Source: Anthoceros angustus
Lineage: Eukaryota > Plantae > Anthocerotophyta
DNA: 64,000 nucleotides
Direction: 5' to 3'
Assembly (NCBI GenBank): GCA_010909165.1
Contig: MU008170.1
Span: 744,001-808,000 of the forward strand
Shown here: in pieces, positions 45,501-58,639 of the stretch
How the letters are laid out: each line of letters starts with the position of its first letter
Numbering within the stretch: the first letter of the stretch is position 1
The notes under the pieces: model-generated
The model's input: only the letters and a program-made list of their open reading frames with translations
What the model was told of the DNA's origin: nothing
Database searches by the model: none
Translations under genes and position numbers: made by a program

Positions 45501-46790
45501 TGGTGAAAAGTCTGGACTGTTGCTCCTCGAGAGATCTGGTGGTAAATGGAGCACAAAGTTGCCACTGTGCGCATGTGACCTTGTCGCCTCGGCCTGGAAG
45601 CCCTTATAGCAGTTCAGGGCGTGCAATCTAGATCCAGACATCCCAAGGGTGCATGAATCCTCGCCCCCCTGCTGCATGCATCCTTTGCTGCACTGACAGT
45701 GCCTTTGGTTTCCTCTCCCCTCCTCCCACAGGACGATGGATGCCTGACTCCCGCTGTGTGTGTGCAGGAGCCTTGTGATTGCCTCCATCCCCGAGGCTCG
45801 CTTGCAATCAAACATCCTCCATGGCTCCTCTCCCGTCCTCCATGCTACCACTGCTACTGCACCTGCTCCTGATCGCGGTGGACGTGAAAGCTGCTCCAGG
45901 CAGCTGGCAATTGCTAGTCCGAAATGCGGGCATATCAGCGATGCACGCGGCCGTGACCCACCACAACACCGTCGTTCTCCTGGACAGGACCAACATCGGA
46001 GCCTCCCCAAATCGCGCTCCCCAACGGGTGTGCAGGAACAACCCACTGGACCGCAGACTGAAACACGACTGCACCGCCCATTCCGTGGTCCTGGACCTGA
46101 ACAACAACGGAATCCGTCCCTCTTCATTCAGACCGACACATGGTGCTCTTCAGGTACGCCCCTGCTGCATGCATCCTTTGCTGCACTGACAGTGCCTTTG
46201 GTTTCCTCTCCTCCTCCCACAGGACGATGGATGCCTGACTCCCGCTGTGTGTGTGCAGGAGCCTTGTGATTGCCTCCATCCCGAGGCTCGCTTGCAATCA
46301 AACATCCTCCATGGCTCCTCTCCCGTCCTCCATGCTACCACTGCTACTGCACCTGCTCCTGATCGCGGTGGACGTGAAAGCTGCTCCAGGCAGCTGGCAA
46401 TTGCTAGTCGAAATGCGGGCATATCAGCGATGCACGCGGCCGTGACCCACCACAACACCGTCGTTCTCCTGGACAGGACCAACATCGGAGCCTCCCCAAA
46501 TCGCGCTCCCCAACGGGTGTGCAGGAACAACCCACTGGACCGCAGACTGAAACACGACTGCACCGCCCATTCCGTGGTCCTGGACCTGAACAACAACGGA
46601 ATCCGTCCCTCTTCATTCAGACCGACACATGGTGCTCTTCAGGTACGCCCCTGCTGCATGCATCCTTTGCTGCACTGACAGTGCCTTTGGTTTCCTCTCC
46701 TCCTCCCACAGGACGATGGATGCCTGACTCCCGCTGTGTGTGTGCAGGAGCCTTGTGATTGCCTCCATCCCGAGGCTCGCTTGCAATCAA
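39600..46790 (+). repeat. Mosaic of partial MCA1 and GLOX copies
   Basis: MCA 3' exons recur at ~41050-41730, ~41960-43260 and ~43355-44810. GLOX 5' region recurs at ~39600-41045, 44830-45470, 45470-46160 and 46160-46650. Confidence 0.9.
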
Positions 46791-46799
46791 ACATCCTCC

Positions 46800-47773
46800 A
46801 TGGCTCCTCTCCCGTCCTCCATGCTACCACTGCTACTGCACCTGCTCCTGATCGCGGTGGACGTGAAAGCTGCTCCAGGCAGCTGGCAATTGCTAGTCGA
46901 AATGCGGGCATATCAGCGATGCACGCGGCCGTGACCCACCACAACACCGTCGTTCTCCTGGACAGGACCAACATCGGAGCCTCCCCAAATCGCGCTCCCC
47001 AACGGGTGTGCAGGAACAACCCACTGGACCGCAGACTGAAACACGACTGCACCGCCCATTCCGTGGTCCTGGACCTGAACAACAACGGAATCCGTCCCCT
47101 CTTCATTCAGACCGACACATGGTGCTCTTCAGGTACGCCCGGCCCTGCTGCAGTCTGTTGCGCGAGACGTCTTTCAGTTCGTTCAGCTTTCACTCCATCT
47201 CGCATGCTCGTGAACCCATGCACTGATCGCCCACCAATTCTGCGCTGCGCAGGCCAGTTCGTGGGCGACGGCACGCTGGTGCAGACCGGGGGCGACGCGG
47301 ACGGCATCGACAAAATCCGGCTGCTCCCGGCCTGCCCCGGCGGCGGGAGCTGCAACTGGATGGAGAGCAGCCGGATGCGGCTCCAGGAGCCGCGGTGGTA
47401 CGCCACCAACCAGCTGCTCCCGGACGGGCGGCAGATCGTGGTGGGAGGCCGCGGCGTCTTCACGCTGGAATTCGTGCCTCCCGCGGCCAGCCCCGTCCTC
47501 CTCCAGCTCCTCCGCGACTCCCGTGACCCCCAGGCCGACAACCTCTACCCCTTCGTCCATCTCCTCCCCAACGGCAACCTCTTCATCTTCGCCAACGCCG
47601 ACTCCATCGAGTACGACTACAATTCCAACACCGTCCTCCGCCACTACCCCCGCCTCCCTGGCGGCCCTCGCAACTACCCCTCCGCCGGCTCCTCCGCCAT
47701 GCTCTCCCTCCTCCCCCAGGCGCCTGCGGGAGAGTATTCCAAGGTAACAATCCTTCAAATTTCCATCTGCTTC

Positions 47774-47846
<73 letters not shown>

Positions 47847-49800
47847 GCTTTTCCTCTTTCCTTCCAATCTGGTTGTGGGTCTCGTTGTTCTGCTTACTTG
47901 TGGGTCGTGTTGTTCTGCTTACTTGTGGGTCGTGTTGTTCTGCAATTGTGGGTCGTGTTGTTCTGCCTCTGGGTCTCGTTGTTCTGCTTAATTGTGGGTC
48001 GTGTTGTTCTGCAATTGTGGGTCGTGTTGTTCTGCCTCTGGGTCTCGTTGTTCTGCTTAATTGTGGGTCGTGTTGTTCTGCTTGTGGGTCTTGTTGTTCT
48101 GCTTGTGTCCGGCGTGTTGTTCTGCTTAGTTGTGGGTCGTGTTGTTCTGCTTGAGGGTCTTGTTGTTCTGCTTGTGACTGGTCGTGGTGTTCTGTGGGTC
48201 GTGCGGACATCTGCTTGTGGGTCGTGTTGTTCTGCTTGTGCGTCGTGCGGACGTCTGCTTGTGGGTGGTGTTGTTCTGCTTGTGGGTGGTGCGGATATCT
48301 CCTTGTGGGTGGTGTTGTTCTGCTTGTGGGTCGTTCTGTCCGGTTGTGGGTCTCGTTGTTCTGCTTTTGGGTCTCGTTGTTCTGCTTTTGGGTTTCGTTG
48401 TTCTGCTTTTGGGTCTCGTTGTTCTGCTTTTGGGTCTCGCAAGTTGTTCTGCTTTTGGGTCTCGAAAGTTGTTCTGCTTGTTCTTATGTTTTTCTTCTTC
48501 CCTTGTGTTTCCTTCAATCTGCTTGTTCGTGTTGCTTTTTTCTCTTCTCTTCTTGTCTTCTGTCGTCTTCTTGTTCTTCAGGGTTTTCTTCTCCGATCCA
48601 CGCTTCCAATCTTCTTCTCCTTGTGTTTCTTCTTCTGCCCAAGAAGCTGTTTTATCTCCACTTCGAATCCCCACTCCCTGTTTTTCTTCTGGTCAACAAA
48701 GCTTCGTAGGAACTCGCATGGCATGAAGATGCTTCCAACTTCGTCTTGCCTTTCTTCTTCCTTTGCTATCTTCATAGGAACTCGTATGACAGGAAGAATG
48801 CCTCCAACTTCTTGTCTTGTCTTGTCTTCTTCTTCTGCTTCTTTCTTCTTGTCCGAGGACCCAATGTGCTTCCAACTGTTTCTTCTTCTGCCCGACAAAA
48901 CACCATAGGAGCCGCTTTGACATGACCACTGCTTCGAACCTCCTCACTCACACTCCTGCTCCTTGCCAATCACCTAACTACACCAATCCTGTCCCCGGCG
49001 CTGCCGCTTGCTGCTGCCCACAGGCTGAGATCTTGATCTGCGGAGGAGCCCAATACGGCGCGTACCAAAGAGGCGACCCCACGGCCCCGGCGACGCAGAC
49101 CTGCGGCCGGATCGTGGCCACGGACGGGGACGCCGCCTGGGAGACGGAAACAATGCCGCTGCGACGAACCATGGGGGACATGGTGCTGGCACCCACAGGC
49201 GAGGTGGTGATCATCAACGGCGCACAAACAGGATCCCAGGGCTGGGGCAACGCAGCCCAGCCGGCATTGAATCCCGTCCTCTACTCCCCAAACAACCCAC
49301 CAGGAGCTCGCTTCACGATCCAAGCCGCATCCCCCATTCCCCGCATGTACCACAGCACAGCCAACCTGCTCCCGGACGCGCGCATCCTCATCGCCGGCTC
49401 CAACACCCACGAAACCTACACGTTCCAAGGCCCGTTCCCGACCGAGCTCCGGATCGAGGCCTTCTCCCCCGGCTATCTCCACGGCCAGAGGCCGGATATC
49501 CGAGCCACCGTCTCAAGCATCGCGTACGGAACGGAGTTCCGGGTCACCGTTGCCTCGCCCACTGCGGGCCTGGAGCTAGCTTTGCTCAGCGCGCCTTTCG
49601 CCACGCATTCCTTGTCCATGGGACAACGTTCCGTTACGCTCGCCGTCGTCTCCTCCGTTGCGGCTGGCCCCGGCGTGTGGGAGCTCGCGGCCCAGGCCCC
49701 GCCATCCGCATCCGTCGCGCCCTCGGGGTACTATATGCTCTTCGCTGTCTCGCGCCCGGAAGGCGTCTCAAGCCGAGCCGCCTGGGTCCATGTCGCCTGA
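46800..49800 (+). CDS. Secreted glyoxal/galactose oxidase-like copper radical oxidase (AA5, GLOX). Exons 46800-47132, 47253-47743, 49024-49800
   Basis: Signal peptide MAPLPSSMLPLLLHLLLIAV, then AGISAMH, DCTAHS, TDTWCSSG, RWYATNQLLPDGR, NLYPFVHLLPNGNLFIFAN, RNYPSAGS, RMYHS, PTELRIEAFSP and FATHS. Exon 1 of this copy has 1-nt indels relative to the 40097 copy. Confidence 0.9.
47774..48480. repeat. (TTG)n microsatellite (~24 units) grading into a degenerate ~21-nt GTTGTTCTGCT minisatellite in GLOX intron 2
   Basis: Directly visible. Confidence 0.92.
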
Positions 49801-51951: not shown

Positions 51952-53325
51952 ATGGCTTACGAAGGAGGCTATGGCAGGAAAGGCAGGCCTGGTGGGTGGT
52001 CGGATTTCACGCGCCTGCATCGCAGCGCAGGAGCAGCAGCGAGAGATGAAGATGATTTTCCATCCCTGGGGAAAGCTTTGGGCGATGGCAGTAGGAGGGC
52101 AGGTTCAGCGCAGGAGTCTGAGACCTTTGCAGCAGTGGCAGGGAAGGGAGTTCTTGCTCCCAGACAGAAGCATTACGATGCAAGGAAGAGGCACGAAGAT
52201 GAAGAGGCGAGCTTGGACCAGGAAGTGGAAGCAACAGCGGAAGCCCACGAGGCAGCTTTCGCGAATTTGAGCTTGCGCTACCCCTGGGCGGAGGGCAGCC
52301 TGTTGCAAGATGTCTTGGCTCAATTCGGGGGCGATGAAGAGATGGGTGCTGCGTATCTCCACTCCATGGCGGAAACCGAAACCTCGCACTCCGCTCCCGC
52401 AGGCACCCATAGCCCACCAGGACAAGCAGAGCCCGAGGCATCACAGCGGGAGGATGTGTACTGGAAGCACCGGAGGGAAGCCATCCGAGCTACCAGGTAG
52501 GGTGAATCCAGCAGCCGCACCCGCTGTTTTCATTTTGTGGGCGGTAAGGATAAGCCTCTGTCGTGGGTGCAGAGATCTAACCAACTGCTCCTGTTGTTGA
52601 AATCAGGGCGAGCCAGAAGCTGGGTCGGGGAGCAGCCAATGCCTACTCCGCCGGCCAGCACAGCACAGCCAAGATGCTGTCTGCGGAGACGAGGAAGCAG
52701 CGGGCGCTAGCCAAGGAGCTGAACCAGCAAGCAGCCCAGTGCATCTTCCGAGAAGTGAATCCCCATGGGCAGGCGCAGCTGTGGAGCCTGGATCTCCATG
52801 GGTTGCACGCTTCCGAGGCCGTGGCAGCCGTCGAGACCCGGTTAGCAGAGATGGAGAGCCTGCTGGCCACGAATCCGGCGGCAGCTCTGTCTCCCAGACG
52901 CTTGGATTCTGACCATCGCCCTCCTCGCCAGGTGGCCGCCAAACCGCGGAGGGTTCCAAGGCAACTGAAGATCATCACAGGTCGGTATTACCTGCCTAAT
53001 CCCGTCATTTCCCTTTCCACTGATGCAGGAAAGGCCAGTCGTGATTAACCGAATGCTGTCCACTGTTCTTTGCAGGAGTTGGAGCACACAGCAAGGGCGG
53101 TGCTTCCATCCCGTTTGCCGTCAAGAAGTTTCTGCTCGACAACGAGTAAGCACGACCGACCCGTCTCTCTTTCCGCCTGCTATTCTGAGAATTTTCACGG
53201 TACTGCCATTCCACAGGCCAGCTGCTGAAGAGACGCAACTGGGCCTGTACCTCTGCAGGTACAGATTCGAGGCACCTCGGGATGGCGTGTTCAGCGTTCG
53301 ACCGAAGGCTCGGTACCGAACATGA
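51952..53325 (+). CDS. Smr (small MutS-related) domain protein with DUF1771-like segment. Exons 51952-52496, 52607-52980, 53076-53145, 53259-53325
   Basis: DVYWKHRREA, AKELNQQAAQCIF, LDLHGLHASEA and LKIITGVGAHS. Splice phases are consistent. Confidence 0.88.
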
Positions 53326-53519
53326 CCCAAAGGGATTAGTGTACCATATGTACATGTCTATATGTATAGAGTGCTTTATGTATCTACACATGGGCACATT
53401 TATGTCTATCTAGCTATTTGTTTATGTACATAAAGTATTATATATACATTTATTTTTATTAAAATCTATAGTATTTTTTACAAGTTCTATATATGACACC
53501 TTTAAACTATCGAATTGCA

Positions 53520-53790
53520 CCCTCTAATTCTGGCAAATGCCCTGAATTGCACCCTCTAATTCTGGCAAATGCCCTTCTCTATGAGCTCTGTCCATAACAT
53601 GTGCCCATAGCATGTTCAATCTATGAGCGTTATTCATAATATATCCAACATTCGAAGGCCCATAGTATGTCCAATCTATGAGTGTTGTCCATAGCATGTC
53701 CAATATCCCAAGGTCCATAACATGTTCAATATCCGAAGGCCCATAACATGTTCAATATCTGAAGGCCCATAACATGTTCATTATCCAATG
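53520..53790. repeat. Degenerate short tandem repeats
   Basis: ccctctaattctggcaaatgccc twice; ccataacatgttcaatatc..aaggc several times. Confidence 0.7.
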
Positions 53791-55211
53791 TCCTTCTTAA
53801 GTATTATTCATATTGTGTTCTACGCTTTGATGTCTTTCTTCCTAAGTATTATGTATAGTGTGTTCTCTTCTCCTTTAGTAATTTTCATAGCATATTCCTT
53901 GATGCCCTTTCCCCTAAGCACTGTCCATAGTGTGTTCCATGTTCTTTTTCTTCAGCACTGTGCATAGAATGTTCCTTGTGCCCTTCTCCTCTTGAAGCAA
54001 TGTTTGTAGCATATTCCCTGAACATTGTTCATAGCATATTTCTCAACGCGTTGGTCAAATATTTAAGAATATGCAATGAACAACTTCATGTTAAAAGTTG
54101 TCAAAAGTTGTTTGACGTCTTCCTGAGAAAGTGACCTAATGCCCTCCATGATCTTGGAGACCTACTACAGGAGTTGTTGAGGAAGCATCATGTTTAAAGT
54201 CACATGTACATATATATCCACGTATAGACTCAAGTTTGCATGCATCTTAAGGACAATGACAACCGCTAAAAATATATCCTCAACAGCTCTAACAAGTACT
54301 AAAGATGTATCTCAATAGCTCTAAAAATATATCCTCAACAGCTCTAACAAGTACTAAAGATGTATCTCAATAGCTCTAACGGAACTATAGATGTATGTTC
54401 GAGAGTTTAGTAGTAAACATACCTTCCTTGTTCTCATGATCATAATAGTTTATGAAACTGTTCTATAATCTCTGCAAGGTAGATTTTTTTTCTCTAATAT
54501 ATGAAATGCACTACCTACATAGCTGAAAGGATTTGTGGCCTGGTATGTAGAGACACAGATCTTGTACACATCTTCCATCTTGTACACAAAAAACAAAATC
54601 CCATGCCCTGATCTTGTACCTCCTACGAGTACGTCATCCTCGAAGGGTCGGGGCCGGCGGGGGTAGGGGTCAACGGTGGAGGTGGGCAGGGCTCCCCTGT
54701 TGGAATCCACGGGGCCCATGTTCCGGGCGAGGTGAAGGGAAGAGAGGGTGAGCCTGTCTATCTCAGGCCTACTTGTACATCCATTTTCTGATAAATCCCG
54801 GGTGGGCAGGCCGGGGTTGGGTGCATGCCCATTGCCCATTGCCCATTGCCCATTGCCCATTGGGCCGAGGGGCCCGTGTTTCAGATGCCTGAGACTGAGA
54901 GCCAAGCTGGGCCCCTCGCGCCGGGCCCTGCCCCGGCCCCGCCCTTGACTTGCAACATAGCTGTCAGAGGAGCTAATTCTGGTGGCCTTCGATGCTATCA
55001 TATTCCAACAAGCCAAGTGGGAGATTTGGAAAGCCTTCCCCTTCCCATTTAAGCCCCGACAGATTCCCAACCCGTTTCCCTCCTGCTGTTGCTGCGCTGT
55101 CTCGGGGGCACGGAATGCGGCTACTGGACTGCACCGGGTAGCAGCACCCGCTGCTCTACGAGCACCTCGGCAGGTTTGGAATTCCTGGTTTGTTGGGTTT
55201 CGGAAACCAAG

Positions 55212-55812
55212 ATGGCGGGCTGGTGGAAGAGCTGGATCTCGGCCTGCGCCCTGCTGGGCTGCCTGGTTGTGGTGGTGGGCGGTAGCGAGCTGGGCTGCCT
55301 CTCCACCTACGATCCCGCCACCAATTACTTCAGCTACCTCACGGGGAACGTCACCGGCCAGGCCTTCGTGCTGCCCATCAATCTCACCATCGTTGATACT
55401 GCTAACGACTTTGCTGTCTCCTACGGGCCTTCCTGGAAGATCGCCAGGAATTCCCTCCGCGGCGCCAACTACCTCTTGAGCCAGGTCTGTTTGTGGTGCA
55501 CCATGTGGATTCTCTTCTTGTCTGGGTTTGGTATGGCTGTCCCGGATTTTGGAATTTTCCTTGCTTTGGTGCAGTGCGGAGCTCCTGCGCCCAACAAGCT
55601 GCAGCTCGGCCTCAACAGCAGCTCGCTGCAGTTCCAGATCCCCGTCGGGAACTACAGCATCGACTCCGACATTCCTGGTACTTGCCATTGCCGAATCTGC
55701 TCTGCGTCCAGACAGGGGATAAGTGCTGCTGCCCTTTTCCTTTCGTGACCCTCTGACATGTTGCGTGTGCTGTGAATCTGGTGCAGTGGCCTACTTGGAG
55801 GTATGGAACCCG

Positions 55813-55853
<41 letters not shown>

Positions 55854-57577
55854 TGTGGGTGTTTTTTGACCTGCGCGCTTGCAGCTACTGGGGGGGTTGA
55901 ATGCCTTGGCGGGAATCGACAGCAGCGCGCAGATCTCGTCCCCGTGCCTGCAGCAGTACGTCACTCAGGGCCTGGTACAGTCCATCAACGCCTCCGACCC
56001 TAGCGTGACGAACCAGTACACCGCGCTCTTCACCTCCCCCTATGTGGGAGCGCCTGCCGACAACAGGACCAACCTCGTGCTGTTTGATGCCACGCTCGAC
56101 CCGGGGCCTTTGAAGGTGTGCCTTCTATCTGCTGCTATCTCTTTGACCAGTTCTGTTGAGACGGACGTGGGGAAGACAGTTTTCATCTTGCCTTCTGCTG
56201 TGGGTGGCTGTTTTTGTAGCGTGCAGAATGGATCAAGTTCATCGCCACGTTTCTCAACCTGGAAGGAAGGGGATACCTTGTTTATGAGACTGTGAGACTC
56301 CTCCTCTCTCCGTCCATGCCTGTGCCGATCGTAAGGTTGTCTGCATGGAGTTGTTCATGTCATCGATGCGTTGCCTGCTTGGTGCTCACAGATCCGACAG
56401 ACCTACCAGTGCCTGAACGGGTCCATGAGCAACTCCTCCGCCAAGCCAACTGTGGCTTGGATGAACTACTACAGCGTGAGTGTGACCCACCTGTATTTCC
56501 CCGACTCTAAGCTGCTACGAGAGTTCCTTGCAACTGGTGGATAATCCCAAACATACTTCTTGCTGTGGCAGGATGTGTGGACGCTGGAAACCCCTTCCTA
56601 TAAGCTGCAGGTATCCCTTCTTCCGTGCCTCCTGAGCAGCGTTTCTTCATCGCCAGCCTACTGGATGATCGTCACCCACTAATGCTGGGACCTCTCGATC
56701 CAGCTTGTTTCGGATGCAGGTGGTGTGAACCTGAACGCCAGCCAGTCTACATACAACATGACGAAGCCAGCAGACGTGCTTGCTTTCCACAACATACTTA
56801 AGGTACTGCTCTCTTCGCGACATCCACATGGTGCAAGGGAATTGCAAAGACGAAAAACAAGGATCTTTACAGACACTTACTCGTGGAGGGATTGCTTCAA
56901 TGCCACGTCCAGACACTGAACGTCATCCTGGACGACTCGTACGCACCGTCCCCGGCGGACTACAAGTTTGCCAACTTCTGCAGCAATGCCAACATCAGCA
57001 TCAACGACCCATCGTACCCTTTCCTTGTCAACCAGAGTGTGTGGCGGAACGACAAGCGACTGGGAGACTCTCTGGGTTTAGGTCAGCTCGTCGTTGCCGT
57101 GTTCATCCATGTTCGAAAGAGTCTGCATTTGCATCAGTTTCTTGATTCTGTTGTCAAATGGGCGGTGGGCAGATTGGTTTGAAGGTGCAGTGGCCCAACC
57201 ACAGATCGTGCTACACGATCTGTTGGGGATATTCTATCCCAGCCTCAAGTACGGAGTGCCCTACTACTTCCGAAACATTGCCAAGGTATGTGTACATCAA
57301 TCAGCTCTGTGGCCGAGGCGCAGCCCTCTTCACATTTGCTTCATTTCCACTGACTGGGTGACTGACTTGCCGCCCATTCTGCTGTGCCCAGGACGAAGCT
57401 GTTGTGACGACATCATCTGAGGGCTGCACAAGGAAAAGCAACGAAGCTTTGGACCCGACTGTGTTTGCTTGTCCGGTGACCACCAAAAAGAACGGTGCCG
57501 TTTCCAGTGCTGCTGTTCCCAGTCTGCTTGGCCTCCTCCTGGCTTCCACTTTGCTCCTTGGTATTACGGTTGGATGA
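55212..57577 (+). CDS. Periplasmic-binding-protein fold (BtuF/CBA1-like) protein with signal peptide and GPI signal; 11 exons, 460 aa
   Basis: Exons 55212-55484, 55575-55677, 55787-55800, 55885-56115, 56220-56291, 56392-56475, 56572-56610, 56704-56802, 56913-57081, 57173-57285 and 57392-57577 splice in frame (1383 nt). Motifs: YLLSQCGAPAP, PLKRAEWIKF, PTVAW, DAGG, VWRNDKR, DWFEGAVAQPQIVLHDL, YFRNIAK. C-terminus NGAVSSAAVPSLLGLLLASTLLLGITVG. Confidence 0.85.
55816..55848. repeat. (TGC)n microsatellite in an intron
   Basis: Directly visible. Confidence 0.9.
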
Positions 57578-58639
57578 GATGAGTTTTTCTTGTACGTCTG
57601 TTAAATTATGAAAAGTACTTCCGGTGGAATCAAATCCCCTCCTCTTCCGTTTTTTGCCACTTCTGGGCGGTGGCACAGTATGTACGAAGAGGAAGTGGAT
57701 GACCTCATGTGGTGTTTCGCCTTGCATTGTACCCTATTATTGCTTTGGCTTTTGTCATGATGTCACCATGCAAGCTCATGTAAGCACCCCTTCACTCGGT
57801 GTGATAATCCATTATTCAAATTTTGGTATGATACCCAAGGCAGTTAAAGCGAAAAACCTGTCCACCTGTCCTTGTGTGAGTTGCTGCTCCTAGGATTCTT
57901 ATTATTAGGATGGGGGAATAGGCAGAAGGCTGATGTGGCCTCATTCATGAGCCCGCTTTATGGCCTCCGGATATGATACCGTTTTGGGAACTTAGGATTA
58001 AGATACGGCTAAACTATGCTTGATTGTGCTATTATAACTGACCAGCTAATTTTTTGCAGCATGCTTCCTTTGAATGAATAGAGGATTGAGTTAGCTTATG
58101 AGTTGAAATGGAGGAGTGAACTTATGAGTACAAGGATCCAGTAGCGTACATATACATGGGTATGTGACAAGCCAAGAAGGCCGCGCATACCGGTTTAACC
58201 TCCTTGTTCTTAGTCTTCTAGGCTAGACGTTAGGCTTTCCAGTTTTACTCAAGGTTCGTTGGGAGTTATTTCCTTTTTACAGTATTTATCCTAGTTTTAT
58301 GGGTGTTATTCTAATCATCTGCTATTCACCTAATTGTCCATCAATTACCTATTTATCAGCTATTATTCTAACCATCTACCTAGTCAGCTGGCATTAACTC
58401 ATCATTATTGGATCGGGAAATCGGTACTTTTGGTTTTCTGCGGTTCCCGTTGCTCGAGCGTGAAGACTGTGAGCAACTTCGGGTCCGAAACTGTTGGGCT
58501 ATGGAGGTCGCGGGATGGCCATTGGCCCGCGACCATTTCATTCTCCCCCACATGGCGAGGTTGGGTCCTCTTGGCCTGTGCAAACCTAGCACTTGTAGGA
58601 GGGTTGTGACCCCCACTCCTATATGGGGAGAAGACACCC

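Follow-up and report, generated by a model that had tools for sequence, protein, structure and literature searches.

A 64,000-nucleotide stretch of the genome of the hornwort Anthoceros angustus (GenBank assembly GCA_010909165.1, contig MU008170.1, positions 744,001 to 808,000 of the forward strand; hereafter the window, in whose coordinates all positions are given) contains an intact nuclear gene of eleven exons on the plus strand, extending from an ATG at 55212 to a TGA that ends at 57577. We assign it with high confidence to the CBA1 family, as an intact gene whose product carries a signal peptide and a terminal hydrophobic tail. Splicing at canonical sites within 54800-58000 yields 1383 nt, equal to 460 codons plus the TGA, with no internal stops; the ten introns are all GT..AG and measure about 91-110 nt each. 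The start codon is the first in-frame ATG and lies in the context accaagATGG, with A at -3 and G at +4.

The exons were searched, aligned and placed in trees singly by reference, with a full-length relative, P0001, standing in for the whole protein. Nine searchable exon pieces fall collinearly on a 96-relative family profile, over positions 38-475 (E 1.7e-16 to 1e-3), and a tblastn search with P0001 matched every searchable exon in order, at 49-78% identity per block and with boundaries that agree with the gene model; one alignment from this search, at 29% identity, crosses exons 6-8 and their introns. Since the searchable exons map collinearly along the profile, the gene, judged from its sequence, is complete, and its model is backed by homology over the whole length.

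Exon 1 (55212..55484, 91 codons) encodes the predicted signal peptide (residues 1-25, 55212-55286), with likely cleavage after G-G-S, and a mature part that carries a conserved Y, K76 and Y..L (profile positions 38-101, E 2.2e-9). Exon 2 (55575..55677, 34 codons plus 1 nt) begins with the C-G-A-P-A-P of the Q-C-G motif and contains the conserved P114 (profile 102-132). Exon 3 (55787..55800) is a 14-nt micro-exon (V-A-Y-L-E) that restores the frame, from which an E-L-L-G motif runs on into exon 4; it is too short for a search of its own and is spanned by the homologue alignment leading into exon 4 (P0001 131-212 at 55873-56115). The core of the N-terminal lobe is encoded by exon 4 (55885..56115, 77 codons), which has the conserved L132, G, C and D-P-G-P-L and is matched by both phmmer and the profile. 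Exon 5 (56220..56291, 24 codons) specifies R-A-E-W-I-K-F-I-A-T-F-L-N-L-E, the most conserved CBA1 motif, covering E206, F214, F215, N216 and E218 of the Chlamydomonas reinhardtii protein (CrCBA1). It is followed by exon 6 (56392..56475, 28 codons) with K-P-T-V-A-W (CrCBA1 P251, V253, W255), by exon 7 (56572..56610, 13 codons; too short for its own search), whose conserved Y-K was read against conserved family columns, and by exon 8 (56704..56802, 33 codons) with a D-A-G-G motif (CrCBA1 G289). The C-terminal lobe starts in exon 9 (56913..57081, 56 codons plus 1 nt), with V-I-L-D-D-S-Y and W-R-N-D-K-R (profile 340-394, E 1.7e-16), and continues in exon 10 (57173..57285, 2 nt plus 37 codons; profile E 7.5e-11), whose (D)W-F-E-G...L-H-D corresponds to CrCBA1 W394, F395, E396 and D408, residues placed around the modelled B12 site (PMC10828217). 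Exon 11 (57392..57577, 61 codons plus TGA) encodes a Cys-containing stalk and then a tail resembling the signal for a glycosylphosphatidylinositol (GPI) anchor. Two simple repeats accompany the gene: a (GCT)12 run in intron 3 (55817-55852) and about five copies of the 7-bp unit CCCATTG at 54830-54862, some 350 bp upstream of the start codon.

An earlier annotation made from the DNA letters, here called the sequence-only reading, had quoted three motifs from this gene, and all are present: LxQCGxPAP as L-S-Q|C-G-A-P-A-P across exons 1 and 2, PLxRAEWIKF as P-L-K|R-A-E-W-I-K-F across exons 4 and 5, and DWFEGAVAxP as D|W-F-E-G-A-V-A-Q-P across exons 9 and 10. All three straddle exon junctions, and that reading had therefore spliced the gene correctly.

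A phmmer search of 1.84 billion representative proteins with the 77 residues of exon 4 returned P0001 (468 aa, E 5.9e-16, 59% identity), P0006 (425 aa, E 3e-8), P0008 (368 aa, E 1.1e-7) and P0010 (a 163-aa fragment, E 2.3e-4), the remaining seven matches being multi-stretch and of low complexity. P0001 comes from an intron-free 2277-nt Logan contig of SRR33208242, i.e., a transcript. P0008 is Ginkgo Gb_31572 save for two residues, and Gb_31572 is listed as CBA1 in Tables S4/S5 of Sayer et al. 2023 (PMC10828217). Word searches seeded with P0001 and with a member from Trebouxia gathered approximately 100 relatives, among them streptophyte algae (Mesotaenium, Spirogloea, Mesostigma), monocots and Cuscuta, many chlorophytes (Chlorella, Haematococcus, Tetradesmus, Polytomella and others) and early-diverging fungi (Coemansia, Umbelopsis, Haplosporangium). 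The CBA1 proteins of Chlamydomonas and Phaeodactylum were not among the word-search matches; CrCBA1 was compared by reading, motif by motif, from the sequence printed in Sayer Table S4, together with that of Phaeodactylum (PtCBA1).

This comparison finds 15 of the 16 residues starred by Sayer et al. (2023) in place. Given as CrCBA1 residue and counterpart here, they are K78 (K76), P118 (P114), L136 (L132), E206 (E210), F214 (F218), N216 (N220), E218 (E222), P251 (P250), V253 (V252), W255 (W254), G289 (G278), W394 (W363), F395 (F364), E396 (E365) and D408 (D377); only F215 is replaced, by a leucine (L219) that P0001 shares. K78 sits in S-T-F-K-V-V-T-N in CrCBA1 and its counterpart in P-S-W-K-I-A-R-N. 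The residues surrounding the modelled B12 position (CrCBA1 W255, W394, F395 and E396) are all kept, as W254, W363, F364 and E365. Across the family, 47 of the 55 columns conserved in at least 80% of members are identical in this protein (the exon 7 Y-K and the split-codon D read by eye). When conservation is set by non-streptophyte members only, the gene retains 42 of 52 covered columns, with gymnosperm-type members at 43/53 and 46/55 and two monocot members at 34/51 and 39/55. The exon 4 match to P0008, the collinear profile and the starred residues together bear out the CBA1-like identity that the sequence-only reading had proposed.

The ends of the protein were judged by hydropathy, the -3/-1 rule and sequence rules. 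At the N-terminus, residues 9-22 form a hydrophobic core, whose Kyte-Doolittle mean over 9 residues rises to 3.4, and the likely cleavage site G-G-S|E follows; the signal peptide claimed earlier is thus present. Twelve N-x-S/T sequons are spread over six exons, as expected for a protein of the secretory pathway. At the C-terminus, T-T-K-K precedes a GPI-type signal (57491..57574) comprising a candidate omega site at N433-G-A, the eight-residue spacer V-S-S-A-A-V-P-S and an uncharged hydrophobic tail of 17 residues (L444-G460) that is also the end of the protein, leaving no cytosolic residues; the only charges near the tail are those of K-K, on the luminal side. By rule, small residues at omega, omega+1 and omega+2, a polar spacer of 5-10 residues and a terminal hydrophobic tail characterize a GPI signal, and each of these is found. 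The protein also displays the N-terminal signal peptide and single C-terminal hydrophobic segment of CBA1. The layout on which the sequence-only reading based its GPI signal (N-G-A, spacer, tail) is thus confirmed, whereas the anchoring itself is a reading by sequence rules. We take the protein to be probably secreted and GPI-tethered.

A terminal hydrophobic segment is common in the family: it occurs in P0001, Mesotaenium, Spirogloea, Mesostigma, most chlorophytes, Umbelopsis and Haplosporangium. It is missing from every seed-plant member examined (P0006, P0008, P0018, P0020, P0021, P0023), from Coemansia and from the Trebouxia-type group, which has a Cys-rich extension in its place; the tailless seed-plant proteins examined look soluble. 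The cysteine of the Q-C-G motif is likewise replaced in the seed-plant members. Both the cysteine and the tail are kept by the present gene, P0001 and the streptophyte algae (relatives P0001, P0012-P0015, P0019). Our literature search found no paper tying CBA1 to GPI anchoring; the wide occurrence of a GPI-type tail across the family, and its absence from seed plants, is possibly a new aspect. We also observe that a large chlorophyte/metagenome subgroup (P0026-P0031, P0041-P0068) shares the near-invariant tail A-A-P-A-V-x-L-L-T-x-L-I-V-F-V-E-A-L-I-N-F-C, a conservation that exceeds the need of a GPI or membrane signal and suggests a specific contact.

The fold was modelled on the orthologue P0001 (AlphaFold2, AF2, with alignment A1), which is 49-78% identical per exon to the present protein. 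The model (mean predicted local distance difference test score, pLDDT, 83.5; predicted template-modelling score, pTM, 0.82) is of low confidence at the signal peptide, the loop 48-61 and the tail, and displays the two alpha/beta lobes joined with one long rigid helix that define class III solute-binding proteins. In a Foldseek search of the PDB, 173 matches had E <= 0.001, and the 50 of them that were listed are all class III periplasmic binding proteins; the best is YiuA (E 8.7e-10), with an iron ABC binding protein of Eubacterium eligens, CeuE and the heme binders PhuT and ShuT also present. VIA-align gave 174 chains at Z >= 8 and placed 4hn9 first (Z 17.8, root-mean-square deviation 3.6, 271 residues aligned); its top 50 range over Z 14.5-17.8 and 240-285 residues and bind iron, siderophores, heme or molybdate. 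The ESM Atlas returned a pair of streptophyte clusters, one bearing the name 'Plant/F12P19-7 protein' (template-modelling score 0.87 by matched cluster and 0.75 by query), as well as a Mucoromycota cluster and an actinobacterial PF01497 cluster. We take the 'Plant/F12P19-7' proteins to be the At1g65900 group.

Sequence searches relate the family to this fold class faintly. None of the nine scannable exon pieces matched Pfam even at E 10, and searches of PDB sequences with exons 4 and 10 gave no matches. The homologues reach at most 24.9 bits against the PF01497 gathering cut-off of 27.5; eight of 21 family members nonetheless have sub-threshold PF01497 matches (E < 0.01) and match no other Pfam family, and a few relatives carry a precomputed PF01497 assignment. 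The periplasmic-binding-protein fold of the sequence-only reading therefore stands, on the orthologue's model, while its label 'BtuF-like' holds for the fold class as a whole and not for BtuF itself; an orthologue of BtuF was set aside, as the fold is common to the whole class and BtuF is not among the 50 best structural matches. As modelled, the fold is no pointer to which ligand is bound.

What such a protein might do is suggested by work in algae, where Chlamydomonas and Phaeodactylum need CBA1 to take up cobalamin and pseudocobalamin (PMC10828217; 10.64898/2026.08.07.738727), and by the report that hornworts have METH, MTRR and CblB/C/D/J in addition to CBA1 homologues (PMC11439496). On this basis we envision the following mechanism. 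The product would enter the endoplasmic reticulum (ER) by way of a cleaved signal peptide, become heavily N-glycosylated at its 12 sequons and fold into a two-lobed class III (BtuF/FhuD/heme-type) solute-binding domain, after which the C-terminal signal would be exchanged for a GPI anchor that holds the protein on the outer face of the plasma membrane. Cobalamin or pseudocobalamin would be bound in the cleft lined by W254 and W363-F364-E365, a proposal we make because of the algal genetics and the reported METH and cobalamin-trafficking genes of hornworts. The ligand would then probably be passed inward by endocytosis or to an unknown carrier, because no BtuCD-type ABC permease partner is known to us in eukaryotes. 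This is the best single reading of the gene, although as a whole explanation, with the B12 function included, we put the secreted, glycosylated, GPI-tethered corrinoid binder somewhat short of an even chance. Capture of B12 is plausible but predicted only, because the gene is orthologous to copies kept by plants that lack B12 metabolism.

Several lines of evidence weigh against this mechanism, the first of which concerns the ligand. In a quick maximum-likelihood tree of 44 relatives, with three exon pieces (the mature part of exon 1, exon 4 and exon 9) entered as separate rows, all three pieces cluster with P0001 (SH-aLRT 94, by the Shimodaira-Hasegawa-like approximate likelihood-ratio test), and the pieces and P0001 are together sister to the seed-plant members (Ginkgo-type and monocots; SH-aLRT 86). 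A streptophyte clade encloses these with Mesotaenium and Spirogloea (SH-aLRT 96, starred), and chlorophytes and fungi lie outside, which agrees with Dorrell et al. (PMC11439496), who reported vertical inheritance. An origin by bacterial contamination or by recent transfer was rejected, given the ten spliceosomal introns and the placement inside this clade. Because of the sister position, the gene is, as far as the sequences tell, the orthologue of one retained by plants without B12 metabolism, and a B12-only reading is weakened. Seed plants use no B12, and Sayer et al. suggested a different function in streptophytes (PMC10828217). The gymnosperm-type P0006 and P0008 keep as many conserved columns as the hornwort gene, and the two monocots fewer. 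The solved structures nearest to the P0001 model are binders of iron, siderophores, heme or molybdate, and BtuF is not among the 50 best matches by either Foldseek or VIA-align. A search of the PDB with the family profile produced nothing significant (best E 0.52, to an unrelated protein), nor did NCBIfam on seven relatives.

Alternatively, the same secreted CBA1-family protein may have a ligand other than B12 in land plants and do the job of its seed-plant orthologues; examples would be capture of heme, of some other tetrapyrrole or of a metal chelate, either on the cell surface or within the secretory pathway. Such a role fits the clustering with seed-plant members in one streptophyte clade, the persistence of most conserved columns in plants that use no B12 (PMC10828217), the affinity of the nearest folds for iron, siderophores and heme, and faint, non-significant profile hints to the heme binder IsdE. 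It sits less easily with the reports that hornworts, and not seed plants, retain METH and the cobalamin-trafficking genes (PMC11439496) and that mosses and liverworts, which have no METH, are also without CBA1, or with the algal-type tail and Q-C-G cysteine that are kept here and lost in seed plants. We regard a non-B12 ligand as a real possibility, yet lean against it. The sequence-only reading had named, as what would speak against it, a grouping with angiosperm homologues that lack binding residues combined with the absence of METH; the grouping with seed-plant homologues is found, but those homologues retain the conserved residues, and METH is reported in hornworts (PMC11439496).

The second line concerns the membrane. 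GPI anchoring is read here from sequence rules, whereas Sayer et al. interpreted the CrCBA1 tail as a transmembrane helix, and tagged algal CBA1 was located mostly on the ER and endomembranes as well as on the plasma membrane (PMC10828217). The C-terminal stretch could accordingly serve not as a GPI signal but as a transmembrane or tail anchor, in which case the protein would act in the ER or endomembranes and not as a surface receptor. CrCBA1, with its predicted C-terminal helix, was seen at the plasma membrane and at ER-like endomembranes, and PtCBA1 in the ER (PMC10828217); the tail is a helix in the AF2 model of P0001; and the uncharged stretch reaches 22 residues when A-A-V-P-S is counted, enough to cross a membrane. 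Yet nothing follows the hydrophobic stretch, the nearby charges (K-K) are on the luminal side only, and N-G-A lies eight residues before the tail in the usual layout of a GPI signal. Moreover, the fluorescent tags of the algal experiments sat at the C-terminus, where they would hide a GPI signal or do away with it, and the images may therefore not be decisive. We consider a transmembrane anchor somewhat unlikely. That the locus might be a non-functional copy, or an artefact of exons read into noise, is hardly credible given that 11 of 11 exons are open with canonical splice sites, that family matches run in order across the exons with 47 of 55 conserved columns intact, and that the start has A at -3 and G at +4.

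Taken together, the secreted class III fold, the CBA1 family and the GPI-type signal of the sequence-only reading hold up. Its further claim, a receptor that scavenges B12, pseudocobalamin or iron chelates from bacterial or cyanobacterial partners, is not established, because the gene is sister to the copies of B12-free seed plants, the nearest folds bind iron, siderophores or heme, the GPI anchor is assigned by sequence rules only, and algal CBA1 was observed mostly on the ER and endomembranes in addition to the plasma membrane. One history that would join these strands, and which as a whole we think unlikely, is that CBA1 was ancestrally a GPI-anchored surface receptor for corrinoids, in which a bacterial BtuF-type fold was re-used and coupled to endocytosis; hornworts would have retained it with METH for cobalamin or pseudocobalamin from soil bacteria or symbiotic Nostoc, and seed plants would have dropped the anchor and the Q-C-G cysteine on giving up B12, with the protein put to another use.

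To our knowledge, there is little understanding of B12 uptake in non-animal eukaryotes, and no algal uptake protein apart from CBA1 is known to us. Hornworts are the single land-plant group reported to have B12-dependent methionine synthase, and they also house cyanobacteria; an intact hornwort CBA1 gene therefore offers a way to ask directly if B12 is taken up by a land plant. Neither the hornwort genes nor the B12-uptake hypothesis is new: the CBA1 homologues and their signal peptides have already been published, as has the proposal of uptake from cyanobionts (Dorrell 2024, PMC11439496; preprint 10.64898/2026.08.07.738727). We add to this an exact model of the gene, its position as sister to the copies of seed plants, and the occurrence of the GPI-type tail across the family.

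METH and a second CBA1-type copy are both absent from the 64-kb window, there is no ABC-transporter gene (BtuCD/FhuBC-type) or other B12 gene near the locus, and a scan of 53500-58500 with Rfam found no family, cobalamin riboswitch included, at E up to 1. Upstream, the gene has two neighbours, one glyoxal-oxidase-like (46.7-49.8 kb) and one DUF1771/Smr-like (about 52-53 kb). The first, at 46736-49800 (+), matches PF07250 (E 1.3e-87) and PF09118 (E 5e-24). A 489-bp unit, repeated 3.0 times at 99% identity over 45666-47140, covers the 5' coding part of this gene and is either a very recent tandem duplication of its first exon or an assembly artefact. Between its coding blocks, at 47774-48461, lie a (TTG)24 run and, after it, about 600 bp of a minisatellite with units of 21-69 bp (77% matches), both presumably intronic. 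The open reading frames at 51952-53048 (+) have a weak DUF1771 match (E 2.3e-4, below the cut-off) and, judged by eye, an Smr-like motif, D-L-H-G-L-H; they are probably a DUF1771/Smr-domain gene unrelated to the CBA1-like one.

Compared with known systems, the protein shares two lobes and one long helix with the bacterial class III (cluster A) solute-binding proteins YiuA, CeuE, PhuT/ShuT, HtsA, FhuD and BtuF (Peripla_BP_2, PF01497), but at a sequence identity of 9-15%, and it is about 130 residues longer, eukaryotic, and predicted to be glycosylated and membrane-tethered. Algal CBA1 (Chlamydomonas reinhardtii Cre02.g081050, Phaeodactylum tricornutum) belongs to the same family, with a signal peptide, a C-terminal hydrophobic segment and the class III fold. 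The hornwort protein has Y-x-L-x-Q-C-G, D-P-G-P-L-x-R-A-E-x-I-K, F-x-N-x-E, P-x-V-A-W, D-A-G-G and W-F-E...D in common with CrCBA1, and W-K-I-A-R-N where CrCBA1 has F-K-V-V-x-N. Identity to chlorophyte members is about 30%, a value measured on P0001 against Trebouxia, CrCBA1 having been compared by reading only. It differs from algal CBA1 in having leucine at F215 and in belonging to a streptophyte clade whose seed-plant members cannot be B12 receptors; the functional data on CBA1 stem from algal members and not from those of land plants. The seed-plant CBA1-like proteins (Ginkgo Gb_31572, which is P0008; 'Plant/F12P19-7 protein'; the Arabidopsis entry of Sayer Table S4) are alike in fold and in most conserved columns, but those examined have lost the tail and the Q-C-G cysteine, both of which are kept here. 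GPI-anchored nutrient receptors are found elsewhere in eukaryotes, as with mammalian folate receptor alpha and the fungal CFEM heme receptors Rbt5/Pga7. Their folds are unrelated to that of CBA1, and the likeness would lie only in the proposed principle, capture of a scarce cofactor by a lipid-anchored protein at the cell surface followed by endocytosis or relay.

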